DNA of 64,000 nucleotides from Amphiscolops sp. MND2022 (GCA_964187785.1 OZ076414.1:29946001-30010000), one strand, 5' to 3'. Counted from the first letter of the stretch, positions 19,901-50,008 are shown. Made by a program: numbers and translations. The notes: generated by a model from the sequence alone, not told the origin.

Positions 19901-22684
19901 AACAACATAGATATAGGCTACTTTTTGGACAAACAAAGTTACCGTCATCAAGTATGACGCCTTCGTTTTTCTGCCGAAAAAACATCAATTTTTTTCAATA
20001 AAATTTCTGGGTTCTTTTTTATTTGAGCTCGTATATCTCATGACCGAAAACCAAACATGGCGTTCATGGTTTCGTTAATTTTACGAGGCCTATGTAGGCT
20101 ACGTTTTAGGATAAAAGCGAAGTCGATTTTTTTTCGCTCTGGATTTTTTTAGCAAATTAATTATTGAAAAATTTTTTCTGCATTTTTTCCATTTTTTTCC
20201 AATTTGTAGCTGATTTTTCTAAGAACTGAAAATAGATACGAAAACCATTGTCCCTCACAAAGTGAGGCAAGTATGTAGGCTTTTGTTTGTACTATCAAAG
20301 TTTCCGTCATGAAGTATGACGCCTTCGGGTTTCTGCCAAAAATACATTTTTTCATTTTTCTCAAAAAAAAATTTCCTTCATCTTTTTAGTTCTTTCATCA
20401 AAATATCTTCATCTGAGACTGGATAAGTTCACAAGGTTGTGAGCCCTGGAACACAAAGAATTTGTAACAATATCTGCAGACCATTGAACGTTTCTGCTCG
20501 TGCCCAAGCGCGACATGCCGTCGCGCCTATGTTTTTTTTCGCAGATTTCGTGACATGTGCCAATTTTTCAAACTTATGAAGCAAATTTCTTTAAACCCAC
20601 ACTAGATGCGGACACCATGTTTTCGCTAAAAGTTGCGCAGGATCCTAGGCTACATTTTCGCCGAAAAAAATTTTCGAAAAAATTCGGCTTCATGGGTTTT
20701 TTTCAAAAGAATTTTTGAAAAAACGCTATTTTTGACTATTTTTCATCTTTGATCCCCTATAGCTCAGAACTGAGACCAAATACAGGGTCCGTGGTTTTGA
20801 AAATTGAACAAGCTTTTCATAGGCTACATTTTGGCCTAAAAATGACGTCAAAATTTTTTTACATACTTGGTGTTTTTGGACAAAAAAATAATGCAAAAAA
20901 TTTTTCGAAAAATTTTTTCTCATTCGTAGCTCATATTTCTCAAAACTGATAAAAGATACAGAACCCGTTCTCTTTCGAGAGGAACAACATAGATATAGGC
21001 TACTTTTTGGACAAACAAAGTTACCGTCATCAAGTATGACGCCTTCGTTTTTCTGCCGAAAAAACATCAATTTTTTTCAATAAAATTTCTGGGTTCTTTT
21101 TTATTTGAGCTCGTATATCTCATGACCAAAAACCAAACATGGCGTTCATGGTTTCGTTAATTTTACGAGGCCTATGTAGGCTACGTTTTAGGATAAAAGC
21201 GAAGTCGATTTTTTTTCGCTCTGGATTTTTTTAGCAAATTAATTATTGAAAAATTTTTTCTGCATTTTTTCCATTTTTTTCCAATTTGTAGCTGATTTTT
21301 CTAAGAACTGAAAATAGATACGAAAACCATTGTCCCTCACAAAGTGAGGCAAGTATGTAGGCTTTTGTTTGTACTATCAAAGTTTCCGTCATGAAGTATG
21401 ACGCCTTCGGGTTTCTGCCAAAAATACATTTTTTCATTTTTCTCAAAAAAAAATTTCCTTCATCTTTTTAGTTCTTTCATCAAAATATCTTCATCTGAGA
21501 CTGGATAAGTTCACAAGGTTGTGAGCCCTGGAACACAAAGAATTTGTAACAACATCTGCAGACCATTGAACGTTTCTGCTCGTGCCCAAGCGCGACATGC
21601 CGTCGCGCCTATGTTTTTTTTCGCAGATTTCGTGACATGTGCCAATTTTTCAAACTTGTGAGGCAAATTTCTCAAAACCCAGAACAGATACGGACACCAT
21701 GTTTTCGCTAGAAGTTGCGCAGGATCCTCGGCTACATTTTCGCCGAAAAAAAGTTTCCAAAAAAATTCGGCTTCATGGGTTTTTTCCAAAGAATTTTTGA
21801 AAAAACGCAAATTTTGACTATTTTTTTTTATTTTTGATTACCTCTATCTCAGAACTGAGACCGAATACAGGATCCATGGTTTCGTAAATTGTACAAGCGT
21901 TTTATAGGCTACATTTTGGTTAAAAAATGACGTCAAAATTGTTTTTCATACTTGGTGTTTTTGGGCAAAGAAGAGGACAAAAAAAGTTTCGAAAATTTTT
22001 TTCTCATTCGTAGCTCATATTTCTCAAAACTGATAAATATACAGAAACCGTTCTCTTTCGAGAAGAAGAGCATAGCTATAAGCTACTTTTTGGACCAACA
22101 AAGTTACCGTCATCAAGTATGACGCCTTCGTTTTTCTGCCAAAAAACTTAATTTTTTTCAAAAAAATTTCTTGGTTCTTTTTTACTTGAGCTCGTATATA
22201 TCTTGTGACCGAGCCCAAATATGGGGTTCATGGTTTCGTTAATTTTAGGCTACGTTTTAGGCTAGAAGTGATGTCGAAATTTTTTTCGCTCTGAATAGTT
22301 TTTAGCAAATAAAGTAATGAAAAAACTTTTCTGAATTTTTTCCATTTTTTTCCAATTTGTAGCTGATTTTTCACAGAACTGAAAATAGATACGAAAACCA
22401 TTCTCCCTCACAAAATGAGGCAAGTATGTAAGCTACTTTTTGTACCATCAAGATTTCCGTCATGAAGTACGACGCCTTCGGGTTTTTGCCAAAAATACAT
22501 TTTTTCAATTTTCTCAAAAAAAGTTTTCCTTCATCTTTTTAGTTCTTTCATCAAAATATCTTCATCTGAGACCGGATATGTTCACAAGGTTGTGGGCCCT
22601 GGAACACAAAGAAATTGTAACACCTTCTGCAGACCATTGAACGTTTCTGCTCGTGCCCAAGCGCGACATGCCGTTGCGCCTATG
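16924..22684 (+). mobile_element. Nested Helentron-associated (HINE/DINE-1-like) elements, family A: 2 heads and 3 bodies/tails
   Basis: Identical 41-bp heads (16924-16964, 16965-17005) with T-tract + GGGCACGAGC + partial inverted repeat. Tails GCTCGTGCCC-aa-hairpin gcgcgac/gtcgcgc-CTATG-T tract end at 20531, 21613 and 22684. Confidence 0.75.
17013..19446 (+). mobile_element. HINE-like element, family B, nested in the T-tract after the family A heads
   Basis: Head gaggcttcg-agcgagcgaagcgaagcga-cgaagtctc, with subTIR GGCTTCGAGCG at 17015-17025. Tail CGCTCGAAGCC (19411-19421) + hairpin cgcaaa/tttgcg + actatg + T10. Confidence 0.7.
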
Positions 22685-22689: not shown

Positions 22690-24408
22690 ATAACTACCCA
22701 TGCAGTACGCATTTCAAAGTAAAGTGTTGAAGTTTTCCAGGTAGAATGAGCGCGGAAATACCCTTGAGTCCAAAAGTGTTTGACGTTTTTTGTACATTTT
22801 GTGTAAATTTTTCGAGCTACTTCGTAGGTTAGAATGGTGTGACTTCATCCATAGACTCAATCCTTATCCAGAAGGCGACATTAAAGACATACTTATATTT
22901 CCTTGTTTTAAAAGCGCGTCAAAATATTCCAAATGAGTAGAAATTATCAGTTTTTTCAATTATTGAACTTTTTAGTTACTTGTATGTGTAGATACATAAA
23001 AAATTTGGTAGGATAGGAACTGCTTTTCACTTACTACAACAACAATACAATTCGGTACTTTTGAGAGTATTCTCAATTTTTAAATAGCATTAGCTACTTT
23101 TGGGCCTTAACTTCATTTCGTAGTACAACAATTTGGGGCAGAAATGATCATGTTGGTCAGCGGGCGTCTTGTTAATAGTGGATCTCAAATAAAACACCAA
23201 GGTCCCAGAAAAACAAAAGAAGGTGTTAAAAAACTTCAGTTTTCAACTTTCCTAAATATCAGAGACTGTAATCATTTTTGGTTCCATAATACAAACTACT
23301 CACGCAAAAATGATCCATGCTTATAGGCTTCAAACAACTTGCAAAAAAAACACTTGGAAAAAGCTACTCTGCTTCCCAAAATATGTCTATTGGCCAAAAC
23401 GCTTCACGATGTGCAGTGACACTGCAGTATTTATGGTAGCGTACTCGAACACGACTCTTTTGGTGAAAATGAACACCGTCTAGCCTCAATCAGTGGTTGG
23501 ACAAAAAAAGTAACATACTTATCAAACTAAATATGACAGAAATATTCCAAGTTGGTGCCCTGTAAATTTACAGGTCTCAAAACGCGTAAAATCTCCTGAA
23601 ATTATTAAACTGCATTTGAATATCTGACAATTCTCACAGTGCCGAAAATACACCTGGGGCTAAAAAGATCCTGTTTGCTAATGCCCCCAACCTACTGCCA
23701 GAAAATTTATCTGTTCCCCAAAATTTTACCACAGAATATCCATCTACACAGAAATAGATTGGCCATATTAAAAAGTTTGCACGATGTTGTGAACAGAAAA
23801 AGTTTTTTCACTTACGCTGCATGAACAACCTGAGTGTAAGAATATTGATTACACCAGTAGCTTTAACTATTCGTGAGAATAGCTCCACTACAACTCAACT
23901 AAAACCGTAGGTACGTACCATGCACGAGACAAGGACTGGCTGAGTATCTACATAAATTTTTATTAACTCCGAAGAAGAGACGAATCAACCTAATCGAAGG
24001 CGGCGGGGGTAAGTGTGACAAGGAAATCACAATCTTTACAACTTTGCTATTTTACTGTCTTTCAGGGGGTTTGTTTCGCTACTCTTGAGCAGTTTTAGGG
24101 TGTCTTTTCGCTGATGAAAAGAAGCAGGTTGAACTTTAATTGAAACGCCACAAATGAATACGTCAATTAATAGACACAAATACAATTTCACAATTGCGAA
24201 TAATAGAGTGAATACTATGGTAACATCGACAATAGCGGAGAATAACACGTGAAATTAGGAGGCATATAACACAAGACAAGAAAACAATAAACAAGGGTTT
24301 CAGCAAGGTTTAGTTGTGTATCCGTGAGGATGAATGTGATATTGAAGATATCGAGAGAATCAACTCGCCGCAAAACCGCTATCGGTCTTGGAGTGAAAAC
24401 AAAGTCCA

Positions 24409-24579
24409 TGTATTCTCAGCCCACTTAGGCAAATCCGTGTATTGTAAGATCACTTAGGCTAATCCGTGTATTCTAAGCCCACTTAGTCAGATGCGTGTAT
24501 TCTAAGCACACTTAGGCAAATCCATGTATTCTAAGCCCACGTAGGCAAATCCGTGTATTTTAAACCCACTTAGGCAATT
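24409..24579. repeat. 29-bp minisatellite, 6 copies
   Basis: Consensus tgtattctaagcccacttaggcaaatccg, contiguous, no spacers. Confidence 0.92.
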
Positions 24580-26821
24580 TTACATGTAATACAATGCAAC
24601 AGACGTCCACCTTACTCCAGGGTCAAAATCAGTAGTAGGGGATGGCGGGGTAGCAATATATCAGGCTGCTTCAGGTTGTTAGGCTGAAGGCACGGGCTAA
24701 CAGGCCAAACGAAGTAAATCTGCAATTTCGATAGTCCGGTGTCTGACGCGGGATGCTATCAGACTCAAAGCAGCAAACCGTTCTCTAGATTTCAACTCAC
24801 TTTGTGTGTCGCTAAAAAGACGCACACATCGGCCAAAGTAACCTTTTCGGCGGTTTAGTCATATCAAAAATCAATTTTGGTCATCTTTCATTTTTGGGGG
24901 CCTGACTAAGTGTTCAGCAAAACAATTTTTCCTACTTCGGTACTAAAGGTTCGTCAGAGTTACTTTTTCCCAGCACGACTCAGTCCTGGTTCCACCTTCT
25001 TGTCAATCATGACGAGTGGTTTTACTTCGTTTTCAATAGAATTTAAGGGGAGGTGTTATTGACTCAATTTTTCCCACTTGTAAGCACGAATTGAACTTCG
25101 GCTTACTGATTGACATTTGTACTTTTTGTCAGGTCGTTTTTGCACACGGCTCCTGACAACCCTCTTCAGCAAAATATGGCTCAAGGAAATTATTTCCAAC
25201 ACTTTACAATAATCTAAAAGGCTATTTTAATTCATACTCTAAAAAGTCGATTTTCGAGTTTCACATTTGAAGGGCAAAAACTAGATGTTTTGATCACGGG
25301 GGTTACAAGTACATCAATTGAAAGTACAATGAAAGGGCTACAAAAGCTCGCGACAAGGCCAAATTTCTATTTCGACATTTTCATAGTAAAAAACGCCCTT
25401 AAAATTTGGTAGTCAAAAATCACATAACAACTTTTGCACAAATCTCAACTTTGGAGGGTCCGTACTCTGTCAATTCGAAAGAAGCCGCCCGAGCTATTAG
25501 AAGTATTTTGCACTTTAGATGAAGTCTCTAGCTTGTTTCAACAACATTTGGTGACGCTTTTTCTGAAAGGGGTCATTTTTCGATTTCTGGTGACCTGACC
25601 ACCAATTTTAGATGTCAATATCTCAACACCGGGTCATTTTTCGGAGAAAACGTTTAAGCTAAAAGCTGTGCGTCAGACATGGTGCGTCTACGCTGAAGGT
25701 TTCAGCTCGATATCGCCCGAAACGTGCAGGGGAGGTTAGAATTTTGGTGAGTCGATTTCACAACTGACAACACAAATTCTCATCTTCCAAATCTTGGAGG
25801 TTCCTCGCTAGCGCGCCGCAGCACTCTATTTTTTTATTTCTTTCACTCGTCCACTTCAATTCTCAAGTACGCTGCGAAGGAGGTGGCTATTGTGCGCTAT
25901 TGTTCTAAGCGATAACCCGCGAAAAAGGGCTAATTAGGCTATTTTAGGGCCTTTTTTAACGTTTCGCTGGGTCAATTCTCAAACACTATTGATTTTTTTC
26001 CATTTACCACAAGATAGGACATTCATTTATTTTTGATTTAGGTCATATCCGAACTAATCCGGACATCTGTAGCGATCACAGGAATTTTTAAAGGAAACTC
26101 ATTTTTGGAGAATCATAAGAAATTTTAAAACAACTAAATTTCAAAGCTTCCCCCAAACATGTTCTCGTTGTTGCACGGAGCTCATATTCTCTACTTCAGC
26201 TCTCCTCTGGACGCGCTGTCGAATGCAGAAAACAATTTGTTGATATCTTTTTTCCTTGTCGAGAAATCACGTTTAGACTTTTACTCTGTATTAAGAGAGG
26301 AGATTATTCCAATGTGTGCGGCGGCCGTTTTCTAAATACCTATGCGTACAGCCACTCACTGCGCGTTCTCATTTTCATTCCTTTCGCTTTCTGCCACGCT
26401 TTGATGAGTGGTATTCATTTGCTCATACCGCACACTGCGGAGTTTCACTCTCGCTTACCCGCAAGTACATTTTTAACATAGCAATTTGATTACATTTCTG
26501 TTCACGGTACATTATGACTTGTAGAGTAATTTGTGTTGAAACTCGTTCCTCAAAATATCCTAATCGTTTACTCAACACGTAGTTAGGTCAAAAAAGGACC
26601 TTTACGTGGTTTAATTTTGCTTATATTCGCAATAGGTATCGAGAAATTCAATGTTAAAGTTTAGTTCAGATTAGAATTTTCTTACATAGGTTTAGGTGGT
26701 GGAGGCGGTGTTACTGCATTAATACGTTGTGCGGCCGCTTCAAAGCAGCTACGAATGGTTATTCTGATTGTCAACGGGACTAAAGACAGGTCTCCCCTCT
26801 ACTTTTGGAAGCATAAAAAAT

Positions 26822-27017: not shown

Positions 27018-27758
27018 GACCCTTTGTTGAAATGAAATTTTTTGCCATTTTTACGGAAAAAATGATTTAATTTCATTTTGAAAACAAACAACAGTTGAAC
27101 CCTGATTAAATGTGAACCGCCACCTCCTTCCTAGCAAGGCGTTGTATGATTCGGATATAACGTCAAAATAACGCACGTTATTTGGTGCGTTTTTTCGATG
27201 TACACGATTCAGTTGTTCCAGGAAAAAGTTTTGAATTTTTTCCGTAGATAACGAAAACTAATAAAACCTGACCATTAAGACAACTCTTTTGCTAGAAAGC
27301 ATCAGATATTCTTAATACTGTTTTTATTTTTAATTACACCTTTTTTATAAAATTTTCATGAAACTCAATTACAAGCCCTTTTTAAGGTTAGTAGAAGTGC
27401 ATTCATTTGTGATTAATTTTGCACCTTTTACTGCGTAGATTCGTTCTCGAGCGTTTAGATCAAACAATTAAAACTAACATTTGGAGACTAGTTCTCACTG
27501 CTAATATTTAATAGGAGGAGATTGATAAACCGAAGAACCCAATTTGATTGAACTTTCAGAAGCACGTGACTAAAAGAACAAGAGTAAAACATGAGACAGA
27601 GAATAGAACCAACAATTGCCATATTGAAAGACAAATTTCGACACATGCACGAATAAACAAGGTTCTTTTCTGTTCAACCACCAATTTGATTTGGAAATAA
27701 GTGAAACTATAAATATGGCTAAAATGACTAAAAACCAAATTAAAATCTTCAATTCTAT

Positions 27759-27991
27759 TGTTGCGTCGCAATAGGATCGAATTAAAAGTTTTATTTCGAC
27801 AAATATTCTCTTTGCTATCTCGAATTATTGAGTCATGATTTGTTCATGAATTTTAATGAATTGTTAAAATATTTGCGGGATTAATTTTTAGCTGATGATT
27901 CATTGTTGTTTCTCTTTCAGTTTAATTCACACTGACATCTCTTTGAAACTAACTTTTTCGAGATATAGAGACTGAAATCTATATTTCTTTA
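27759..27991 (+). repeat. BEL 5' LTR (TG...TA)
   Basis: Apparently identical to 36541-36773; ends TTTCTTTA directly before the PBS. Confidence 0.96.
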
Positions 27992-28614
27992 TGGTGGCCA
28001 TAGAGAGGCATCGTTGGGGTCTCTGATCATACTCACAACTGAGTCGTGCACTTCCTTCATCTGGGAGCGACTGTTCCAGTACTGGTAGTTCGTCGTCTCC
28101 CCTTCTTTCGTGATTTTCTCTTTCACGTCCAACAACCTGAGTTGAAGTTGGTTCAGCATGGTCATGCACCCATTGCCACCCACGGCAAAGACCCCCGTGA
28201 GGTCACCTCCCCTGGCGGCCGAGGTCAAGTAGAGGTCAGATGACTCAGCCAGCACAGGGGCAGCCGCGTTCCTGAACTTCTCCTCGAGGATAAGACACTT
28301 GACTTTGTTTTCGACCAACTGCTTCAGCTTGTTGCCCAGTGTCTTCAGTCGCGTCTGTCTGTTGTGGTACAAGTTCATATTTTCCACAGTCTGCGAGGCT
28401 CGCCGCTCTACTTCGTTCAATCGACTCAACAGAAGCTGCAGATGGTCCTTGAGTTCGGCAACGTCGTGGTTCTGATGGGATGTGATGGAGCATTTGTAGC
28501 AGATAGAAGTGAGACAGTTGGGGCTGTAGCAGAACAACTCCAGCTTCTTCTTGTGTTCGAAACAGCTCTGACTCTCTTCTATCTCCTTCTGTCGCAGCTT
28601 CTCTATTATCTGTG
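27989..28614 (-). CDS. Antisense TRIM-like B-box2 + coiled-coil exon inside the BEL leader
   Basis: Stop-free frame from ~28636 to 27989. Motif CFEHKKKLELFCYSPNCLTSICYKCSITSHQNH fits the B-box type 2 spacing and is followed by a heptad-rich helix. No ATG before the B-box. Poly-T/CTAAT/ttatag|cacag acceptor at 28615-28617 or 28610-28612. Confidence 0.75.
27992..28008 (+). promoter_or_regulatory. BEL primer-binding site (tRNA-Ile-like TGGTGGCC)
   Basis: TGGTGGCCATAGAGAGG abuts the 5' LTR. The tRNA identity is inferred from a GGCC acceptor stem with an A discriminator. Confidence 0.65.
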
Positions 28615-28844
28615 CTATAAAATTAGATATTTTGAGCTAGCAAGTCTTTGAAAAAAAAAAAATCAATTCCAGTCACAGTATTGAAATTTTCCGAACACGT
28701 TAAAACAAAAACTTTCGAGTGGTTGAATAGTAAAAAAAAAAACCACACGTTTTAGAAAATTCTCGAGTAGTTCAATTTGTGTTGTAAAAAGTGTTGTAAA
28801 AAAAAAAACTATCAGAAATTTTTGTATCGCATATCCTTGTTTCA

Positions 28845-29474
28845 ATGTCAAAAAAAAAAACACGCATGGTATTCATCTTAGCCGCTAGTTCTTTACACCA
28901 TGCTCTCGAAACCTTAACCCGCGAAGAACAAGAACAATTTAAAGAAAAAACCTATACAATCCCGGGCCTAAGTCTTAATCCGAACACGAAAAACCCCAAA
29001 AAGATTGTTCAAAATTTACTTTCGAAAGATCTGAAAGATAAAAAAGACATTGTAATTTGGCACGATGTATTGAACAATAGTATTTCGAAACATGATAGCA
29101 ACAATTTCCGTGCTTTATCAGTGTTAGATCTAATTATAACTTTGAAAAATCTTCAAGACAAGCTTTGTGCTCTGGTGTATTGCCAACGTAACCGCACTCC
29201 GTACATTTTCGAAGAATTGAAAGTTTTGCAAGCTGATCATGACATCAATGTGTTCAGTATCGTCAAAGATTTCATATCCGTGAAAAAACAAAAAGATCCC
29301 GAGATTCTTAAACAATTCAAGGCGTTGCATCAGAGCCCAGAGCTTGAGCTGAAGAATTTGGATTTTGTTCTCCGTAAAGAGAATCATCTCTCAGCAATAA
29401 CTGATAAAAGCCGCCCCAAACGACCAAGTAAGCGTGCCCGTAACGCTACTAAGAGAGCCGCTGCCTCATTTTAG
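28845..29474 (+). CDS. 209-aa accessory ORF, SGNH-hydrolase/esterase-like, with a basic C-terminal tail
   Basis: ATG-initiated intact ORF. Candidate SGNH blocks: FILAASSLHH (S), TIPGLS (G), IVIWHDVLNNSI (N), KALHQS (H). C-terminal KSRPKRPSKRAR. The ORF is solid; the fold call is by eye. Confidence 0.65.
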   Translation: MSKKKTRMVFILAASSLHHALETLTREEQEQFKEKTYTIPGLSLNPNTKNPKKIVQNLLSKDLKDKKDIVIWHDVLNNSISKHDSNNFRALSVLDLIITLKNLQDKLCALVYCQRNRTPYIFEELKVLQADHDINVFSIVKDFISVKKQKDPEILKQFKALHQSPELELKNLDFVLRKENHLSAITDKSRPKRPSKRARNATKRAAASF

Positions 29475-29900
29475 TCTCAGTAGGTAACCCACCACCGCTT
29501 CTTTCAGCTGTTGAGACAGTGTCCGAACTTCACTGATCGGTTGAAGTTTCTTCAGCTCTTCCTCCCATTTTCAGAGTTGTGTCCAGTCTTGACTGACTGG
29601 TTGATACTCTGACAAAACGTTTCGTCCCTCACCCGCACCACCGTCAACTGAGACCGCGTTTCTTCAACGCGACTTTGAGTTCATCGTGTTCCGTCCTCGT
29701 AGTCTGTGACTACTTTTAACTAAAAAAAAAACAATTCACCGGTTTTTTTTTGCTGAAGCACTGTACAAACACAGTGTTGTCACCGAAAAACAACGTTGTT
29801 TCTACTACCGAACTTTTTCATGAACTGTGTCCAAACTTAATTGTTTGGTTGACGTCTGAAAAAGTACAAACGCCCACCGATCCCCAATTTTTACAACGTC

Positions 29901-32900
29901 ATGTCTGACCCTATTCACGAGAAGGTGCAAAAGTTGTACGACAGTCGCGCGAAAGCCGAAGCCGACTTGAATAGATATCAAAACGACGTGACAGAAGCAG
30001 TAAATAATGCCGACAGACGCGTTCGCGTCGAACGGTTGGTCACTTCTTGCGAAGAGGCTATGACAAAAGCTTTCGCTAAGAACGAACAGCTACTCGAGCT
30101 TGCCAAGAAAACCAACGACCCGGCAACTGCAACAGCGGACTTAGAAAAATGGTTGAACGTCACGAGCATACAAAACGATGAAATTTTGAGACGTGCAAGG
30201 GAATATATCGATCGATGTCCCAAAACAGATAATTCTTCTCAAACTTCAGTCAAAGCTGCCACCGTGAAGACCAAGTCTAGCAAAGCTTCAAGCAGCAAAG
30301 TTTCGAAAACCTCAAGTCAGCGACAACGTGATTTGCTTATTGCCAAACACAAACGAGAAGAAGTTGAAAGGCAAAACGAAGCTGCTTTACGACTGGCTAA
30401 GCAAAAGCAAGAACTGGAACTAGAACAACTGCAAGAAGAGAACCGCAAACGACTTGCAGAAGCGCATCTAGTTGAACTTGAACTTCAAGATGACCCATCC
30501 GAAGCTAACGAGGAAGCTCATGAAACTCTTTCGCGGTTGAGCAGAACAACGGACGCTAGCGAAACACGCCGAGTTAGCGACTGGGTTAACAACTCGCCAA
30601 ATGTTCCTGCAACTAATCCAGAGACGGAAACCTTGGTAACTGCAAGTCTTGCGACTCCAATTAATAACCCAACTGTTTCGATACCATTCCAGCAACCTCC
30701 GATCAATGTTTCTCAGCCGTCTTTTGCACCAGGTGATGTGAACGAAACACACATGACAGTACATTTGCCGACAACTACCGCTCCAACAATGAGTTTGAAT
30801 CACACTCCTACAGTACAAATTCAGACTCCTCCATCGACAGCGCAAATCGTTGGAAACATTGTACCCTCAACATCGGCTGTCATAAGACAACAACCAGGTC
30901 AACAGACAACCGTCCCGAATCAAATTGGAAGTTTTGGTGCACACGTTTTACCGCCTCAACCGACAACACGGATGCCCACGTTCACAATGCCGGTGAACCA
31001 CATCCTCCCCAACTTGTCCGCATGGACCTTCCCGAACCCGGCCGTTACCACCGCACCGATTCCAACAACAATTCTACCCCCGACACAGCCGACGGCACCT
31101 ACCTTCATGCCGTTTCCTCACACGCCAACTCGTCCCGCTTCGACCGTACCCATTACCGCTGGTGGAACTGTTTATTATGTACCACCAGCAACCGTTACAA
31201 CGCCAATTGTGTACAGTACAGTAGCACAACCTACGACTTCTCTTAGTCCAACAGCCGCTACATTTGTGCCAGCCGGAACATCAACAACTATGCAACCAAG
31301 TACAACCGGATTCACGATACAAGATCTGGCCCTGTTGTTAGCTTCAACGAAGAAAGACCATTTGCCGGAGTGGAAACTAGCGCAATATGACGGCGACCCA
31401 ATTCAATGGTATGAATGGTTTGGCCAGTTCAAAAGTGCCATAGACTCAGCCCCACTCACAGATGACGTCAAGTTAACGTACCTCAAGACTCTTGTTACAG
31501 GCAAAGCAAAGACTGCTATCGCTGAATTTGCTTACTGCGGAGCGATGTATAGAGACGCCCTAAAGACACTAGAACGGAAGTTTGGACAGCCACAGGCTGT
31601 AGTAACTGCTTATCTGGAAAAGTTGGCAAACTTTCCACCTGTGAAGATGCACAACAGCGAGAGCATCATCAGTTACTCAGCGACAATCTGTTCTCTAGTT
31701 GGGGTCTTCCGATCGCTAAACTACGTCCAAGATCTGTCGAGTGCTTCACTGCTCGGCCAAGCGGTTCAAAAGCTTCCCCCGAACTTGAAAGAAGGATGGT
31801 CAATGCATACAGTGAAGCGGGATTTGAACCGACCGACTCTGATTGACTTCAATGATTGGCTGAAGGACAAAGCTGAAGCTCACGAGAGGATGAAAGCTGC
31901 TACTAGAAAACCAAAAGTTGAAGAAACTCCGACCGGAAACGTAACGAAAACCAAGACCAATTCTAAAGTGTTCGCTGCAACAACAACTTCCACTAAAAAT
32001 ACCATCGCAACCAAGCCGTCAACCCAGAAATTCCAAGTTAATTGTGTAGTTTGCAAAGATAAGCACCCGTTGTGGCGATGTCTAGTGTTCAGAAAGAAGA
32101 CTCCAACAGAACGAGCGAAAGTTGTTGCCGAGAACAAACTTTGTTTCTCATGCTTTAATGGACAACACTCTTTCCGCAATTGCCCACAACCTCGCAAATG
32201 CACCAAAGATGGCTGTGGAAGTACGCACAACACTTTGCTACATGGTGCAGAGAAGATTTTCCCGAGAAAATCTGAATCTGAGAAAGCGGGCAATGGTGAA
32301 GCAACTACTTGTAGCGTAACAACAGCGACCCAAAGGAAAAACGAGAAAAACGAAGTCACTTCATGCCTCCCTTCCGTCTCTGACGTAAAAGGATTGTTAC
32401 AAATAACGGAAGTGGAATTGCAAACTTCTGAGAAATCTGACAAGGTCTTAGTTTTGTGCGACTCAGCATGTAGTCATTCTTGGATTTCCTCTGAACTAGC
32501 TCGCAAACTTGACGTGCACGGCACGCCGACCAAATTGACTGTACACGGAATTAACTCCAATAAGGTTGTTGACACTCAAATGGTCGAGCTCAAGTTGACA
32601 CCGGTTCATTCGGGTGGCTCTTGCTCCTCCTTTACTGTCAAACCTTATGTGCGAGATCAAATGACTATTGGAAATGATGTAATTGACGTAGATGATTTGA
32701 AGACTCGCTATCCACACTTAGAACCAATCGCTCTTAGCAAGTACAGCTACAAAGATGTGAAAATGATTCTTGGTCAGGACGCCTTCCACGCTATCCGCCC
32801 ACTGGAGTATTTCGAATCCGACCGCCGAAATACCCCAGTTGCCGTCCGTTTACCGTTGGGCTGGGTACTGAGTGGACCTCTTCCGTCGACCACGGGTCTG

Positions 32901-35900
32901 TTTTCGACATGCTTTAAAGCTGTTACACAACAAGAACACGATTGTACACTCTCTGACCGACTCCGAAGCTGGTACGACATTGAGTCGTACGGCGCATACA
33001 AACAAGTGGATTCCCGTTCCGCAACCGACGCGAGAGCGACAAAGATACTTGATGAAACAACATACCACGATGGGTCCCGATACCAAGTGGGTAAGTTGTG
33101 GGCCGACGACGAAAGTTGTTTACCGAACAATTATTTTTCTGCACTTATTCAACTGAAATCGCTAGAGCGCCGTCTTCAAAAAGATGGTGATTTGAAAGCC
33201 AGTTACACGAAAACAATTAACGACGATTTCTCGAAAGGCTATATTGTTCAAGTGGACAAAACTGATTGTTTTAAAGTAGACCAGCCCCGGGAATGGTATT
33301 TACCGCACCATCCGGTCGTACATCCTCACAAACCTGGCAAAGTCCGTAGGGTTCTTAATGGTGCCGCAAAATTTCATGGTCAATCCTTGAACAGTGCTCT
33401 TCTAGCAGGACCAGATTTGCTGCAGAGCCTAATCCACATTCTTTTCCGTTTCCGTCAATATCCTTTTGCTGTATCTGCAGACATCGAAGGAATGTTTCTC
33501 CAAGTTGGAGTTATCCCACGTGACAGACCATCACTTCGATTTTTGTGGCGGGAGCACCCAGCAGCTGAGGTTGCTGTTTTCGAGTATGTTCGGCATATCT
33601 TCGGCTCTAAAGATTCGCCAACATGCGCTAACTACGCTCTGAAACGAACTGCCACAGATAACCAAGCCAACTTCCCAGATGCAGCACGAAGCGTTCATAA
33701 CAACTTTTACATGGACGATTACCTCGAATCAAGTCCAACAGCTATCGAAGCCTCAAACAAAGCGAAGGATCTTGTTAAAATGCTTGCTTTGGGAGAGTTT
33801 AAACTGACAAAGTTCGTGTCTAATGTACCAAGCATCCCCATCGAAGTAGATCCGAACAGCGACACCAGAACCACAGAAGAGAAAGAGATTCCGACTGCGG
33901 AGAAATTCTCGCACGTTCTTGGAATGAAATGGAATCACTCAACAGACACCCTAGTTGTTAGCAGAGGAACAAGTCCAAACACCGACCGAAAAGTCACTCA
34001 AAGGGTTGTTCTGAGTTTGGTATCCGCTGTATACGACCCAATTGGTCTCGTCGCGCCGTTCACCATCAAAGCGCGCCTGCTTTTGAAAGACATTTGGAGG
34101 CTCAGTGGCCAGCAGTGGGACGACAACTTGCCAGACGATATTGTAACAAAGTTCTTGGAATGGAGCAAAGAGTTGTCAAGTTTGAATGAAATTACCATAC
34201 CAAGAAGCTACTTCTGTCAAACGGTTGAAACAATTGAGCTGCACGTGTTTGGTGATAGCTCACAAGATGCTTTCGGCGCAGTCGCTTTCTTGCGAGGAAA
34301 ACTAGTAAATGACCACGATGTTGTGACACAGCTGGCTTTCGTCTTTGGAAAAGCAAGAGTGGCTCCTATGAAGGCACTAACTGTTCCAAAGTTGGAGCTA
34401 CAAGCCGCATTACTTGCAGCACGACTTCGCGCCGAAGTCCTCCGTGCACTGTCTTTGAAGATAGACAGAACTTTCATGTGGAGCGATAGTTCAACTGTGC
34501 TTCAGTGGTTAACTTCTTTGGAAAAGCAACCTACCTTTGTTGCGAACCGAGTATGCGAGATTCTAGAATTAACAACTGTCGATGAGTGGCACTACGTCCC
34601 TACAGCTCACAATCCGGCTGATGCGGGCACACGTGGAATGTCTGCAACTGATCTTTTGAACAGTTGTTGGCTGACAGGACCAGACTTTCTAAAAACATCC
34701 GACTTCCCTTTCAAACTCCCAGAAGAATTTGATCAAAAAGTGAAGCTCAACAAAGGCGCTGATTCCAATAAAGTTATCGAAACCAAAGAACATCAGTGTA
34801 CTACAATCACCGCAACAGTAACCGAAATTGCAACAACTTTCAAATGGCAGAAGTACAGTTCGTACGAGAAGCTTCTGCGCATTGTGGCTTACATGTTGCG
34901 ACTTCTTCCCAAGAACGAATCCAAGCGCACTGACACTGGATTTATTACAGACCCAACTGAACTCGACAATGCCCAACAGAGATTGTTCCATCTGGTACAA
35001 CTCGAGTCTTTTAACACCGAAAGGAAATGCTTGTTGAAGTCACTCCCCCTCAGCAAGTCTTCTAAAATTGTTGAATTTTCCCCTTTCATTGGACCTAATG
35101 GTTTACTGCGAGCTTCTGGTCGCACAAAACAGCTAGATGTTGCCTCGTTTGACATGAAACACCCAATTTTACTGGACAGCCGTCACCCCGCCGTACGCTT
35201 GTACTTAGAACAACTCCACGAAACGCATTGTCATCAGGGTGTCGACTACTTGAGGGCGTTGGTGCAGCAACAGTTCGCCATCGTCAAACTTAGAACCGCC
35301 CTGAGGTCAATTGTTTCCAACTGTGTCACTTGCCGCAAACGTCGAGCGGAAACCATCAACCCGATAATGTCAGATCTCCCTCGAGAAAGACTGGCGTTTA
35401 AAGCGCGTCCATTTACGAACACCGGAATTGATTATTTTGGTCCGTTTTACGTAGCGGTGAAAAGATCAACCGAAAAACGATGGGGATTCCTGTTCACCTG
35501 CTTAACTACCAGAGCTGTCCATTTTGAAGTTGTTCCGTCAATGGACACTAGTAGCTGTGTCATGGGAATCGAAAGATTCGCTGCCCGTCGGGGCGTCCCA
35601 TCAGTTTTGTGGTCTGACAATGGAACCAACTTTATCGCCAGCGAAAAGGAGTTGCTACAAAACGTGTCAGCGTGGAATCAACAGATTCTGTCTGAAGCTT
35701 TGGTCAAAAAACAGATACATTGGAAATTCAATCCCCCCAGTGCTCCTCACCACGGAGGTGTCTGGGAACGAATTGTCAGAAGCTTCAAACACGTCTTTTA
35801 CGCAATCCTTGGAAACCGTCGCCTAACTGACGAGATACTAACAACTACCTTCTGTCTAGTAGAGCAGAGTCTCAACTCTCGTCCACTGGTACCCGTTAGC

Positions 35901-36320
35901 TCTGACGCTACAGATTTGGACGCATTAACTCCAAATCATTTCCTATTGGGAACCGCGAGTTCCACATTGCCATCGCACGAAAGAGCCGACGTAGACCACA
36001 GGAAACGCTACGCACGAGCGCAAGCGTACTCAGATGCAATTTGGGACCGTTGGTTAAAAGATTACGTTCCGTCGCTTAACCGCCGTACAAAGTGGTCTGC
36101 CCAATCAGATCGAGACTTGAAGACCGGAGATCTTGTCTGGATCGTCGAGCCCACGAGTCCACGAGGACATTATCCACTTGCACGTGTGGTTAAGTTGAAC
36201 TACGGACCCGACTCAGTCGCCCGCTCTGCAGAACTGAAGACAACAACAGGAAACCTGGTTCGACCCATCGTCAAACTTGCACCCGTTCTCCCGCCCTCTG
36301 TTTCTCCCGATTGCCAATAA
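29901..36320 (+). CDS. BEL/Pao Gag-Pol polyprotein (2139 aa)
   Basis: DUF1759-like Gag; three Cys/His knuckles (CVVCKDKHPLWRC, CFSCFNGQHSFRNC, CTKDGCGSTHNTLLH); protease LCDSACSHS; RT YMDD; RNase H HVFGDSSQ; integrase DYFGP/SDNGTNF/WER; DUF5641-like tail. Confidence 0.98.
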   Translation: MSDPIHEKVQKLYDSRAKAEADLNRYQNDVTEAVNNADRRVRVERLVTSCEEAMTKAFAKNEQLLELAKKTNDPATATADLEKWLNVTSIQNDEILRRAREYIDRCPKTDNSSQTSVKAATVKTKSSKASSSKVSKTSSQRQRDLLIAKHKREEVERQNEAALRLAKQKQELELEQLQEENRKRLAEAHLVELELQDDPSEANEEAHETLSRLSRTTDASETRRVSDWVNNSPNVPATNPETETLVTASLATPINNPTVSIPFQQPPINVSQPSFAPGDVNETHMTVHLPTTTAPTMSLNHTPTVQIQTPPSTAQIVGNIVPSTSAVIRQQPGQQTTVPNQIGSFGAHVLPPQPTTRMPTFTMPVNHILPNLSAWTFPNPAVTTAPIPTTILPPTQPTAPTFMPFPHTPTRPASTVPITAGGTVYYVPPATVTTPIVYSTVAQPTTSLSPTAATFVPAGTSTTMQPSTTGFTIQDLALLLASTKKDHLPEWKLAQYDGDPIQWYEWFGQFKSAIDSAPLTDDVKLTYLKTLVTGKAKTAIAEFAYCGAMYRDALKTLERKFGQPQAVVTAYLEKLANFPPVKMHNSESIISYSATICSLVGVFRSLNYVQDLSSASLLGQAVQKLPPNLKEGWSMHTVKRDLNRPTLIDFNDWLKDKAEAHERMKAATRKPKVEETPTGNVTKTKTNSKVFAATTTSTKNTIATKPSTQKFQVNCVVCKDKHPLWRCLVFRKKTPTERAKVVAENKLCFSCFNGQHSFRNCPQPRKCTKDGCGSTHNTLLHGAEKIFPRKSESEKAGNGEATTCSVTTATQRKNEKNEVTSCLPSVSDVKGLLQITEVELQTSEKSDKVLVLCDSACSHSWISSELARKLDVHGTPTKLTVHGINSNKVVDTQMVELKLTPVHSGGSCSSFTVKPYVRDQMTIGNDVIDVDDLKTRYPHLEPIALSKYSYKDVKMILGQDAFHAIRPLEYFESDRRNTPVAVRLPLGWVLSGPLPSTTGLFSTCFKAVTQQEHDCTLSDRLRSWYDIESYGAYKQVDSRSATDARATKILDETTYHDGSRYQVGKLWADDESCLPNNYFSALIQLKSLERRLQKDGDLKASYTKTINDDFSKGYIVQVDKTDCFKVDQPREWYLPHHPVVHPHKPGKVRRVLNGAAKFHGQSLNSALLAGPDLLQSLIHILFRFRQYPFAVSADIEGMFLQVGVIPRDRPSLRFLWREHPAAEVAVFEYVRHIFGSKDSPTCANYALKRTATDNQANFPDAARSVHNNFYMDDYLESSPTAIEASNKAKDLVKMLALGEFKLTKFVSNVPSIPIEVDPNSDTRTTEEKEIPTAEKFSHVLGMKWNHSTDTLVVSRGTSPNTDRKVTQRVVLSLVSAVYDPIGLVAPFTIKARLLLKDIWRLSGQQWDDNLPDDIVTKFLEWSKELSSLNEITIPRSYFCQTVETIELHVFGDSSQDAFGAVAFLRGKLVNDHDVVTQLAFVFGKARVAPMKALTVPKLELQAALLAARLRAEVLRALSLKIDRTFMWSDSSTVLQWLTSLEKQPTFVANRVCEILELTTVDEWHYVPTAHNPADAGTRGMSATDLLNSCWLTGPDFLKTSDFPFKLPEEFDQKVKLNKGADSNKVIETKEHQCTTITATVTEIATTFKWQKYSSYEKLLRIVAYMLRLLPKNESKRTDTGFITDPTELDNAQQRLFHLVQLESFNTERKCLLKSLPLSKSSKIVEFSPFIGPNGLLRASGRTKQLDVASFDMKHPILLDSRHPAVRLYLEQLHETHCHQGVDYLRALVQQQFAIVKLRTALRSIVSNCVTCRKRRAETINPIMSDLPRERLAFKARPFTNTGIDYFGPFYVAVKRSTEKRWGFLFTCLTTRAVHFEVVPSMDTSSCVMGIERFAARRGVPSVLWSDNGTNFIASEKELLQNVSAWNQQILSEALVKKQIHWKFNPPSAPHHGGVWERIVRSFKHVFYAILGNRRLTDEILTTTFCLVEQSLNSRPLVPVSSDATDLDALTPNHFLLGTASSTLPSHERADVDHRKRYARAQAYSDAIWDRWLKDYVPSLNRRTKWSAQSDRDLKTGDLVWIVEPTSPRGHYPLARVVKLNYGPDSVARSAELKTTTGNLVRPIVKLAPVLPPSVSPDCQ

Positions 36321-36540
36321 TCTTGATTGTTTCGTTTTGTTTGTTCCTCTCGTAACCCTACTTATCAAAGAATACCATGTAACATGTAAACCATTTTCTG
36401 AAAAAAAAAATTCATGTAAACCGTTTTTCGAAAAAAAAAATCATTTAAACCGTTTTCCAAAAAAAAAAAAACTTTCCCATGTAACCTTTATCATATTCAG
36501 GTCTAACGTTTTGCATTCATATCTTCTTGGGCCCGGAGGA

Positions 36541-36773
36541 TGTTGCGTCGCAATAGGATCGAATTAAAAGTTTTATTTCGACAAATATTCTCTTTGCTAT
36601 CTCGAATTATTGAGTCATGATTTGTTCATGAATTTTAATGAATTGTTAAAATATTTGCGGGATTAATTTTTAGCTGATGATTCATTGTTGTTTCTCTTTC
36701 AGTTTAATTCACACTGACATCTCTTTGAAACTAACTTTTTCGAGATATAGAGACTGAAATCTATATTTCTTTA
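36541..36773 (+). repeat. BEL 3' LTR
   Basis: Follows PPT gggcccggagga and is followed by TSD tctat, after which the array unit resumes. Confidence 0.96.
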
Positions 36774-39700
36774 TCTATATTTAGTTTGAAGGACACAGTT
36801 TAGGATTCAGATATACACTTAGTTTAAACTATTTCCACCAATGAAGTCATGATTAGGAAATCAACCGCTTCAATTTTCGAATCACAGAAAAGAGTTGAAC
36901 CTTAATGTAATCACTATCAAACTGGCGAAAAATATTTTGTTCAAGCGATGATACATTACTATAGAAGTTTACTTCTTGTTATGCAAAAAAAATACTTTTT
37001 CAATTATACCAGTTTGAAGAACTGTTTAAACTTTTATTTCGAAACATTTAATTGTGGTGGAAAAACAGAAAGGAGATTACACCAGATTTACTAGAAATTC
37101 TAGTTGTTTGAAAGAAAAGGAAGCGAAACCAGTACGCCAGCTGCTACTTCAGGGAACAACCTTTTAGCCAAAAGAGTTTTTTTAGGACATTTTCCTACGC
37201 CCAAAAAATTAGCCATATTTTTGAAGTCATTGGGAAATGATGATGTCTGTAGCTGTAGTTGATAGTGTGAATATATGTTACATCATTGAAAAACAACAAA
37301 AAAATTCCGTTAGAGATTTAGACGTTGAGAAAAATCAAAACTATTTCACTAGGTACAAATTGGCCTTGTCGCAAGTTTCTTAGTCGGCGCTTTTCTTGAA
37401 AAGAGTCGACTATAGTCATGGCTTTTCGCAATTGTTATTTAAAAATTTTTTTCGATACACCCGAACTGACCAAAAAATTTCTATAAAAAGTTCAACAAAT
37501 TTTTAAATTGCCCCTGTTGGCCCGGGAAATTTTTTCCGGATGCTGCAGAAGAGAACACTATGACTTTTTGAAGTCCTTTTGCTGTTTTTGAGACTTAGAT
37601 ATGGCGCTTACTTGGGCCGGTCCCGGCTTGCTTGGTTACTATTTTTGAAGCAATTTTGGAAAAACATTATTCGGAGGTAATCTTCTGCAAAACAACTATC
37701 AATCAAAAAAATTAACATCTGGAAAATCGAAGATGAGGTTGTAGCCATCGTGTGAGGATACATTTGTTGTTTCGTTTCCCCCTAATTAACATAGTCGTGT
37801 TTCAAAGCGGCCTACAAACTTCTCATGTGAAAACTCTTGTCTTGAAATTTTCGATAAGAATCTTACAATTTCGTGGAACCCTTAGTAAGAATCTTGGCAA
37901 GATTCAAATCAAGAGCGCCAAGGATATATACAATCTTGCAAGAACTTGCCAAGAGTTTCGAGAGAAAAACTAGCAAAAGTGAATGAAAACAAGCAAAAAC
38001 CCACGCCTACTTCGACTTGATCAGTGTACCAATCAAGGTACCAACCACGCTGTTCGCGCTACCAACCAAGCTATCATGTTCTGAATTTCAATATTTTGTG
38101 TTGTCTTGTATCCAATACTTCAAAGATTGATAGTTAGGCGGTAGTGCTCAAACAGTTAAAACTAACATTTTGGAAACTAGTTCTCACTGCTAATAATTAA
38201 ACGAAGAAGATTGATGAACCGATGAACCCAATTTGATTGGACTTTCAGAAGCACGTGACTAAAAAAACAAGAGTAAAACATGAGACTGAAGTAGAATAAA
38301 ACCAACAATTGCCATATTGAAAAACAAATTCCGACACATGAACGATTAAACAAAGTTCTTTTCTGTTCAACCACCAATTTGCTTTGGAAAAAGGTGAAAC
38401 TATAAATATGGCTGATATGACCAAAAACCAAAATAAAATCTTCAATTTTATGTTTAGTTTCAAGGTCACAGTTTAGGATCCAGATATACACTTAGTTTAA
38501 ACTATGTCCACCTATGAAGTCATGACTAGGAAATCAACAGCTTCATTTTTCGAATCACAAAAAAAGTTCAATCTCAATGTAATCACTATCAAACTGGCGA
38601 AAAATATTTAGTTCAAACGATGATACATTACAACAGAAGTTTACTTCTTGTTATGCAAAAAATTTTACTTTTTAATTATACCAATTTGAAGAACTGTTTA
38701 AACTTTTATTTCATAACATTTGATTGTGGTGGAAAACCAGAAAGGAGATACACCATATTTACTGGAAATTCTAGTTATTTGAAAGAAAAGGAAGTGAAAC
38801 CAGTAACCCAGCTGCTACTTCAGAGATTAACCTTTTAGCAAAAAGAGTATTTTTTAGGAATTTTTCCTACACCCAAACAATTAGCGATAATTTTGAAGTC
38901 ATTGGGAAATGATGATGTCTGTAGCTGTAGTTGATAGTGTGAATATATGTTACATCATTGAAAAACAACAAAAAATTTCCGTTAGAGATTTAGACGTTGA
39001 GAAAAATCAAAACTATTTCACTAGGTACAAATTTGGCTTGTCGCAAGTTTCTTAGTCGGCGCTTTTCTTGAAAAGAGTTGACTATAGTCATGGCTTTTCG
39101 CAATTGTTTTTTAAAATTTTGTTTCGATACACCTGAAGTGACCAAAACAATTCTACAAAAAGTTCAACAAAATTTTTAAATTGCCCCTGTTGGCCCGGGA
39201 AATTTTTTTCGGGTGCTGTTGAAAAGAATACTTTGACACTTTGAAGTCCTTTTGCTGTTTTTGAGACTTAGATATGGCGCCTACTTGGGCCAGTCCCGGC
39301 TTGTTTGGTTACATTTTTTGAAGCAATTTTGGAAAAACATTATTCGGAGGTAATCTTCTGCAAAACAACTATCAATCAAAAAGTAATACAACTGGAAAAT
39401 CGAAGATGAGGTTGTAGCCATCGTGTGACGTTACATTCGTAGTTTCGTTTAACCCTAATTAACCTAGTCGTGTTTCAAAGTAGCCTACAAACTTCCCAGT
39501 GAGAAAACTCTTGAAATTCTCGATAAGAGTCCTAAAATTTCTTGAAACCCTTGGTAAGAATCTTGGCAAGAATCATATCAAGAGCGCCAATGATATGTAC
39601 AATCTTGCAAGATCTTGCCAAGCGTTTCAAGAGAAAAGCTGGGAAAAGTGAATGAAAACAAACAAAAACCCACACAAACTATCAAGGTACCTACCACGCT

Positions 39701-40699
39701 CTTCGCGCTACCAACCAAGCTATCATGTTCTGAATTTCAATATTTTGTGTTGTCTTGCATCCAATACTTCAAAGAATGATAGTTAGGTGGCAGTGCTCAA
39801 ACAGTAAAAACTAACATTTTGGAGACTAGTCTCACTGCTAATAATTAAACAAAGAAGATTGATGAACCGATGAACCCAATTTGATTGGACTTTCAGAAGC
39901 ACGTGACTCAAAGAACAAGAGTGAAACATGAGACTGAAGTAGAATAAAACCAACAATTGCCATATTGAAAAACAATTCCGACACATGAACGATTAAACAA
40001 GGTTCTTTTCTGTTCAACCACCAATTTGCTTTGGAAAAAGGTGAAACTATAAAAATGGCTAAAATGACCAAAAACCAAAGTAAAATTTTCAATTCTATGT
40101 TTAGTTTCGAGGTCACAGTTTAGGATCCAGATATTCACTTAGTTTAAACTATTTCCACCAATGAAGTCATGACTAGGAAATCAACAGCTTCAATTTTCGA
40201 ATCACAAAAAAGAGTTGAACCTCAATGTAATCACTATCAAACTGACGAAAAATATTTTGTTCAAACGATGATACATTACTATAGAAGTTTACTTCTTATC
40301 ATGCAAAAAATTTTACTTTTTGATTATACCAGTTTGAAGAACTGTTTAACTTTTATTTCAAAACTTTGATTGTGGTGGAAAAACAGAAAGGAGATTACAC
40401 CATATTTACTGGAAGTTCTAGTTATTTGAAAGAAAAGGAAGTAAAATCATTACCCCAGCTGCTACTTCAGGGAACAACTTTTCAGCAAAAAGAGTATTTT
40501 TTAGGAATTTTGCCTACTCCCAAACAATTAGCAATAATTGTGAAGTTATTGGGAAATGATGATGTCTCCAGTTGTAGTTGATAGTGTGAATATATGTTAC
40601 ATCATTGAAAACAACAAAAAACTTCCGTTGGGGATTTAGACGTTGAGAAAAATCAAAACTATTTTACCAGATTGAAGTTTGGCTCGTCGCAAATTTCTA

Positions 40700-40950
40700 A
40701 GTCGGCGCTTTTCCTGCAAAGAGCCGACTATAGTCATGGCCTTCCGTGAGTGTTTTTAAATTTTGTTTTTCGATACACCTGAAGTGACCAAAATATTTCT
40801 ACAAAAAGTTCAACAAAATTTTAAAGTGCCCCTGTTGGCCCGGAAAAATTTTTTTGGGTGCTGTAGAAGAGAATACTTTGACACTTTGAAGTCCTTTTGC
40901 TGTTTTTGAGACTTAGATATGGCGCCTAAGTGGGCCAGTCCCGGCTTGTT
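40700..40950 (+). mobile_element. Short family C HINE embedded in the 1.66-kb unit (one of 6 equivalent copies)
   Basis: Head AGTCGGCGC-ttttcctgcaaa-gagccgactatag; tail tttgagacttagatatggcgccta..gggccagtcccggc. Equivalents near 37381, 39053, 42360, 44030 and 45683. Confidence 0.6.
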
Positions 40951-49808: not shown

Positions 49809-50008
49809 NNNNNNNNNNNNNNNNNNNNNNNNNNNNNNNNNNNNNNNNNNNNNNNNNNNNNNNNNNNNNNNNNNNNNNNNNNNNNNNNNNNNNNNNNNNN
49901 NNNNNNNNNNNNNNNNNNNNNNNNNNNNNNNNNNNNNNNNNNNNNNNNNNNNNNNNNNNNNNNNNNNNNNNNNNNNNNNNNNNNNNNNNNNNNNNNNNNN
50001 NNNNNNNN
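49809..50008. other. Assembly gap (200 N)
   Basis: Run of N from 49809 to 50008. Confidence 0.99.

Follow-up and report, generated by a model that had tools for sequence, protein, structure and literature searches.

An antisense copy of a spliced host TRIM mRNA next to the primer-binding site of a very young BEL/Pao retrotransposon in an acoel genome

Within a 64,000-nt stretch of the Amphiscolops sp. MND2022 genome (GCA_964187785.1, OZ076414.1:29946001-30010000; hereafter the window), a BEL/Pao retrotransposon at positions 27759-36773 carries a piece of a host gene in its leader. The element is complete and very young, and the segment that directly follows its primer-binding site (PBS) is an antisense retrocopy, about 600 nt long, of a spliced host mRNA. 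This capture is real, recent, mRNA-derived, and transposition-competent. We present below the evidence for the element, for the parent gene, and for the route by which the copy may have entered, and weigh whether the cargo does anything for the element that carries it.

The element is bounded by two long terminal repeats (LTRs) of 233 nt on the plus strand, the 5′ LTR (27759-27991, TGTTGCG...CTTTA) and the 3′ LTR (36541-36773), which are 100% identical. Outside them lie the two copies of a 5-bp target-site duplication, TCTAT (27754-27758 and 36774-36778), and the uninterrupted site is found in neighboring satellite units. Directly after the 5′ LTR comes the 19-nt PBS, TGGTGGCCATAGAGAGGCA (27992-28010, plus strand), the last 5 nt of which (28006-28010) form a microhomology with the host mRNA. 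We assign this sequence as the PBS because it is common to three diverged sister families with otherwise unrelated leaders; including that of the window, it is found in four families (L007, L015, and the reversed element of L017 being the others), with one mismatch in L017. The window and 14 loci contain no tRNA gene with which to confirm it. Beyond the cargo, and again on the plus strand, follow an A-rich remainder of the leader (28613-28844), an ORF of 209 aa (ORF1, 28845-29474), an intact gag-pol ORF of 2139 aa (29901-36320, from translation and Pfam), and a polypurine-rich tract, GGGCCCGGAGGA (36529-36540), which precedes the 3′ LTR and is the same in L007. ORF1 is conserved in the sister families, at 85-89% nucleotide identity in L007 and L015, and has no Pfam family match, only a sub-threshold one to PNMA (E 0.04). 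In gag-pol, a single frame holds the Pfam domains DUF1759, Peptidase_A17, Integrase_H2C2, and DUF5641; RVT_1, which is on record for relatives, stayed below reporting at E 0.1 in the Pfam scan of the window copy. The identical LTR pair, the target duplication, and the one intact gag-pol ORF agree with the description of a young BEL/Pao element given by the first-pass annotation of this DNA. BLAST detected no further copy of the LTR, the cargo, or the leader inside the window, each matching only itself.

The surroundings of the element are repetitive. It sits inside one unit of a tandem array with a 1.67-kb unit (at least five units, 60-99% alike, at 36775-45100 and 27460-27758), the other units of which give the empty target site. 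A second tandem repeat (unit of ~1.08 kb, three copies) and a 29-nt minisatellite (six copies) lie upstream of the element (20000-22600 and 24380-24605), and two runs of 200 N are located far from it (535-734 and 49809-50008).

On the minus strand, from 28636 to 27992, translation gives an open frame of 215 codons, whose stop (27989-27991) lies at the edge of the LTR. The frame ends in five codons that are the PBS of the element in reverse, so that the cargo proper occupies 28011-28612. From the sequence alone, the first-pass annotation had described here a stop-free frame of about 216 codons with the motif C-x2-H-x7-C-x4-C-x4-C-x2-C-x4-H-x2-H and a long heptad helix, devoid of RING, SPRY, and NHL domains and of any ATG before the B-box, in a segment richer in GC than its flanks. 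All of these points were recovered. The motif is exact in the minus-strand translation, none of the three domains is encoded in the frame, no ATG lies between the upstream stop and the B-box, and the GC content is 0.54-0.55 against 0.28-0.39 in the flanks. For an N-terminal RING in particular, none is found in the frame, which is closed 22 codons ahead of the first B-box cysteine. The profile scan on which the B-box call had been staked returned Pfam zf-B_box at 27.9 bits, above the gathering score of 24.1 (E 2.6e-6), and places the domain at 28454-28576. Furthermore, sequence matches of the cargo in the PDB are the B-boxes of TRIM29, Midline-2, TIF1-beta, TRIM39, and TRIM3. Across 28 sequences, the zinc ligands C19, H22, C30, C40, C43, H48, and H51 are invariant, and the remaining ligand, C35, occurs in at least 90%.

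An AlphaFold2 model of the cargo, built with 28 relatives in the alignment (mean pLDDT 80.6), starts with a small zinc-finger fold and continues into a single helix of 78 residues (56-133, pLDDT >90), the predicted counterpart of the heptad helix, followed by shorter back-folding helices at residues 149-174 and 184-199. The best PDB matches of this model in Foldseek are all TRIM B-box/coiled-coil structures (TRIM5alpha, KAP1, and TRIM72), with weak E values of 2e-3 and up, and the B-box superposes on solved B-boxes with an rmsd of 1.1-1.5 Å. As modeled, the cargo is a B-box type 2 joined to a long coiled-coil helix with back-folding helices.

The host assembly was taken from ENA analysis ERZ25074608, of which locus L010 equals the window over 12 kb, flanks included. 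The search for the parent suggested by the first-pass annotation located the gene in this same assembly, on contig ctg185640. There, PIG-L and IFRD are followed first by an unrelated BEL/Pao element and then by the gene itself, of which a RING exon, the three exons homologous to the cargo, and additional exons with counterparts among the ORFs of the orthologue on L002 come in this order. This position after PIG-L and IFRD is a synteny common to three other acoel loci. Protein searches with the cargo returned only four close relatives, all of RING-B-box-coiled-coil type and encoded by genes after PIG-L and IFRD at four loci. The IFRD protein puts the organisms among the acoels, since its identity to the best named matches is 57% for Symsagittifera roscoffensis and 55% for Convolutriloba macropyga, against 28% for a tardigrade, which comes next. 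Pfam matches to RING and B-box are present in the orthologues P0001 and P0004. A PDB sequence search pairs a downstream ORF of the orthologue on L002 with the NHL domains of TRIM3 and TRIM2 (E 7e-6 to 6e-5), and this ORF is 96% identical to a host exon at the parent locus. Pfam itself gave only weak WD40-type matches for the C-terminal domain of the parent, and searches with two intermediate ORFs were without match. By its sequence, then, the parent appears to be a TRIM-NHL-type rather than a SPRY-type gene, as seen in separate exons from the RING to an NHL-like exon; as such, it would not be a SPRY-type capsid sensor like TRIM5.

Several features of the parent locus and its counterparts are recorded here in their own right. 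The intron positions of the gene vary between species (L001 10001-10468, L002 1507-2388): RING and B-box share one ORF in L001, at a place where the host has a 2.4-kb intron, and no exon B or C was detected in L001 over the following 10 kb. The BEL/Pao element that separates the RING exon of the parent from IFRD (L012 11606-20189, on ctg185640) lies in the orientation of the gene and has an ORF of 2142 aa, LTRs of 1057 nt that are 99.8% alike, and a PBS different from that of the cargo-bearing family; it shares with that family only short stretches at 69-77% identity and is without link to the capture. Near the orthologous locus of a Symsagittifera-like assembly, an ORF of 175 aa (L003 16553-17080) gives a weak Pfam signal for Monjiviricetes_fusion and is possibly a fragment of an endogenous virus.

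Aligned to the parent, the cargo resolves into three minus-strand blocks. Positions 28448-28612 correspond to exon A without its first 6 nt, encoding the B-box (98.2% identical), positions 28137-28447 to all 311 nt of exon B, encoding coiled coil (97.5%), and positions 28011-28136 to the first part of exon C, encoding the end of the coiled coil (96.6%), with an exact B/C junction. These blocks are three HSPs (96.6-98.2% identity) that follow the exon order A, B, C of the parent, and the overall identity to the parent exons is 98%. The homology begins downstream of the RING exon, at a point 6 nt into exon A. Both intervening introns (~710 and ~330 nt, GT..AG) are absent from the cargo and the exon joins are exact to the base, the parent exons having been joined as predicted, unaltered, for this test of the splice model. 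The cargo must therefore come from a processed mRNA. The capture of a host TRIM exon proposed in the first-pass annotation is in this way confirmed as to the capture, with a parent in the same genome, and revised as to the single exon, since three consecutive exons were taken up in spliced form.

The distribution of the cargo was then followed through ERZ25074608 using an exact match to a side ORF inside the cargo as a tag. The tag is present on four contigs, each time beside the same gag-pol. These four copies (the window, L008, L009, which is the same as L006, and L011) are 99.4-99.9% alike, the other three being 99.4-99.6% identical to the window's copy over the full 9 kb, have differing flanks and their own 5-bp duplications (TCTAT in the window; CTTGG, GACGA, and GAAGC in the other three), and have LTR pairs that differ by 0-1 nt. 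Pairwise substitutions within the family amount to 0.04-0.28%. Confinement of the cargo to one copy, or frameshifts in its sisters, had been named beforehand as observations that would speak against the decoy idea; instead, four independent insertions carry it, with neither gaps nor new stops in any of the four. The gag-pol ORF is whole in three of them and interrupted once in L008. The possibility that the cargo is a chimeric join of the assembly or a random frame can be set aside as practically nil. It is a general possibility only, the window's N runs being far from the element, and is refuted by the recurrence of the structure on four contigs, with their ~92-113x coverage, distinct flanks, and duplications, and by the 98% identity to a syntenic host gene; the Pfam match above the gathering score also speaks against it.

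A fifth copy, L014 (ctg185729), is 99.3% identical; one large internal deletion has taken out its leader, cargo included, together with the beginning of gag-pol. We considered L014 as the pre-capture state and rejected it, as its cargo is missing through this deletion only. The non-coding edge of the deletion adjoins the PBS, and the locus also contains rearranged LTR pieces. No close family member free of cargo was found, the 90% protein cluster being made up of the cargo group (99.8-100%) and of mosaics without cargo (~91%); no older cargo-bearing relics were found either. The mosaics, plus-strand elements of L016 and L017, are 88-89% identical to the window element in central pol and 65-78% in gag and at the ends, a pattern suggestive of recombination among BEL/Pao families; their ORFs are split into several parts.

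More distant relatives place the cargo in a variable part of the element. L007 and L015, at ~80% nucleotide identity, have the PBS and everything from ORF1 onwards in common with the window element, and the same holds for the PBS and ORF1-onward sequence of an older, reversed element in L017. Between these two landmarks, the three hold 640-880 nt of sequence unrelated mutually and to the cargo (L007 2066-2946; L015 3248-3890; L017 13075-13752, in a minus-strand element). The L017 insert has an exon-like GC content of 0.52 and a frame of 132 codons antisense to the element. None of the three inserts has a Pfam match or a match among the fetched loci; they may be further captures. Such unrelated content in the slot of the sister families favors the view of the cargo as a tolerated passenger. 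From 28608 on, the window is 76% identical to the leader of the L017 relative, which has no TRIM cargo.

The two ends of the cargo offer an indication of how it was acquired. Next to the PBS, the sequence of the parent mRNA is TGCCTGTCAACTGGCCA and that of the PBS complement TGCCTCTCTATGGCCA, with agreement at 14 of 17 positions and one gap; the cargo begins at the base right after this PBS-like match. The microhomology proper is TGCCT, plus two more positions after a mismatch. In the 939 nt of parent exons, no better match to the PBS complement exists, and 3% of shuffles reach the same quality. At the leader side, a second microhomology, ATCTG (28608-28612), is found both in the antisense of exon A and in the leader of the cargo-less L017 relative, whose homology to the window starts exactly at 28608.

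In LTR elements, plus-strand strong-stop DNA ends in the PBS sequence and must anneal to the PBS complement on minus-strand DNA. An antisense copy flush with the PBS therefore points to this plus-strand transfer and not to a switch during minus-strand synthesis. In the scheme we propose, the 3′ end (PBS) of plus-strand strong-stop DNA would have annealed to the PBS-like stretch of a co-packaged host mRNA and been extended along it through exons C, B, and A, leaving an antisense copy flush with the PBS. Synthesis would then have switched back to the element leader at the 5-nt match ATCTG. The resulting chimera would have kept its LTRs, PBS, polypurine tract, and gag-pol, and with them the ability to copy itself and spread. 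The mis-annealing step is inferred from this geometry alone. Two observations tell against it: the PBS-like match is only modestly significant, and in mRNA sense the cargo starts 6 nt from the border of exon A, a coincidence that the model does not explain. On balance, we regard LTR-mediated retrocopying by strong-stop mis-annealing, with the cargo now most likely a passenger in a tolerant leader, as the probable account.

The comparison of cargo and parent bears on whether the copy is coding. Over 202 codons, there are 12 differences, nine synonymous and three non-synonymous (dS 0.073, dN 0.006, omega 0.086). Neutrality of this divergence is rejected (P = 1e-4), as is a model that combines a drifting cargo lineage, contributing half the divergence, with a constrained parent (P ~0.004). 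Ten of the differences are common to all four copies, eight of these being synonymous, and the changes that followed the split of the copies (one synonymous, two non-synonymous) look neutral. Judged from P0001, the cargo has the derived state at two of the three amino-acid replacements, one of them a Leu to Pro in a helix. Polarization with the nearest orthologue, L001, in which only exon A is alignable, assigns one synonymous change to each side. The intact frame is itself uninformative, because it stays open in 56-74% of trials after 6-12 random substitutions.

The low omega may be read in either of two ways: coding selection on the cargo, or differences that mostly predate the capture, the mRNA having come from a divergent allele, an unassembled paralogue, or a sibling species. 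Divergence before capture fits the very young age of the family, the failure to find older cargo-bearing relics, and the neutral-looking changes after the copies split. A pure passenger, for its part, needs an mRNA from a divergent allele, paralogue, or sibling species outside the assembly. The low dN/dS is the sole result that leans, at the level of sequence comparison, toward a role for the protein.

Expression signals were examined with the same question in mind. The poly-T tract, CTAAT, and ttatag|cacag pointed out in the first-pass annotation are present on the minus strand, but as ordinary leader sequence also found in the L017 relative that lacks the cargo, and not as an antisense acceptor acquired with it. 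Similarly, the antisense AATAAA is there (TTTATT at 27790-27795), but as a signal it does not stand out from chance in an LTR of 28% GC; the hexamer TTTATT has a frequency of 0.8 per kb in the window. Nothing in the sequence calls for expression of the cargo.

It seems unlikely to us that the cargo is kept by selection, be it as a RING-less protein made from an antisense transcript and poisoning a host TRIM-NHL dimer, or as a built-in antisense RNA. The protein version, which the first-pass annotation favored, we hold to be very unlikely. It would have an antisense spliced transcript yield a B-box/coiled-coil protein without RING and NHL domains that dimerizes with the host TRIM-NHL protein and blocks it. 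B-box plus coiled coil is the self-association module of TRIM proteins (TRIM5, KAP1, and others), and the cargo is predicted to cover exactly the B-box and the full coiled-coil hairpin. The frame is intact in all four copies, its omega against the parent is the low one given above, and an AG after a T-rich tract lies within 6 nt of the acceptor position of the parent's own exon. Nevertheless, an upstream exon would be required, as there is no ATG ahead of the B-box; the acceptor-like motif is the inherited leader just described, and the poly(A) signal is at chance level. The neutral-looking post-split changes and the cargo-derived replacements, with a proline in the helix, do not favor a maintained protein, and the parent, of NHL type, is not a known capsid sensor.

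An effect at the RNA level, in which the sense transcript of the element pairs with the host TRIM-NHL mRNA or feeds small RNAs against it, would be suggested by analogy and appears to us quite unlikely. Some TRIM-NHL proteins (NHL-2, Mei-P26, TRIM71, and TRIM32) work with Argonaute pathways. Every full-length element RNA would include 600 nt antisense to the host gene at 98% identity to its exons, with no need for an extra promoter, and there is precedent (PMC13534243) for elements that captured host silencing genes and target them through small RNAs. Against this, nothing ties the parent gene to silencing, the excess of synonymous changes is not predicted by such a role, and the unrelated sequences in the sister slots fit a tolerant slot better than a targeted capture. 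If selection did keep the cargo in either form, an active acoel BEL/Pao element would be armed with a piece of a host regulator, and the PBS-adjacent slot would be a recurrent entry point, sister families holding other, partly GC-rich inserts.

Irrespective of function, the case is an unusually clean record of mRNA pick-up, with the parent, the spliced copy, both junctions, and the daughter insertions in one genome. The step it would imply is the second strand transfer of reverse transcription, whereas gene capture is usually ascribed to another step. Moreover, the element being autonomous, a host protein-interaction module is copied around the genome, and new genes, antisense regulation of the parent, or interference with the parent may arise from this material. 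Our literature search found no report of TRIM or B-box cargo in retrotransposons, which need not mean that none exists.

Known systems resemble the cargo in part. Short TRIM5 isoforms without SPRY act as dominant negatives; they are host-encoded, keep the RING, and are expressed. Truncated TRIM isoforms resemble the cargo in pairing a B-box2 with a coiled coil and in lacking the C-terminal domain that binds the target, whereas the cargo is also without RING and start codon and derives from a parent of apparent NHL type. Among LTR elements, additional coding-like sequence in an otherwise standard element is not new: plant Ty3/gypsy elements carry antisense ORFs, and the cargo is comparable to these in that respect. 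LTR elements of bdelloid rotifers have varied ORF3s (PMC5408684). Such extra or antisense ORFs are complete, have start codons, and are conserved across diverged families, whereas the cargo is a fragment of very recent origin, with 98% identity to its parent, and is found in one young family.

A closer analogy is provided by the Drosophila telomeric elements, which captured nxf2 (TART), piwi, and aubergine, with an anti-silencing role (PMC13534243). As in TART-nxf2, a host-gene fragment highly similar to the host gene is found in all active copies of the family, which leaves room for cross-talk between their RNAs. The Drosophila cases differ in that they concern non-LTR elements and known piRNA-pathway genes and that small RNAs were measured, whereas the present case is known from DNA.

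The nearest relation is to LTR-mediated retroposition as described by Tan et al. 2016 (PMC5131818), in which partial mRNA copies are found inside LTR elements, including BEL/Pao, with a median microsimilarity of 6 bp and secondary transposition. As in those retrocopies, among them the BEL/Pao cases BATUMI and BEL18_AG, the copy is partial, intron-free, and located between LTRs. Microsimilarity is present at both switch points (5 + 5 nt here, against the median of 6 bp), and the chimera transposed further. The published retrocopies replace part of the ORFs and are non-autonomous, whereas here gag-pol is whole and only the leader is changed; also unlike them, the cargo is antisense and abuts the PBS. 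The case is a variant of microsimilarity-driven LTR-mediated retroposition, set apart from the published cases by the autonomy of the chimera and the antisense orientation of the copy.
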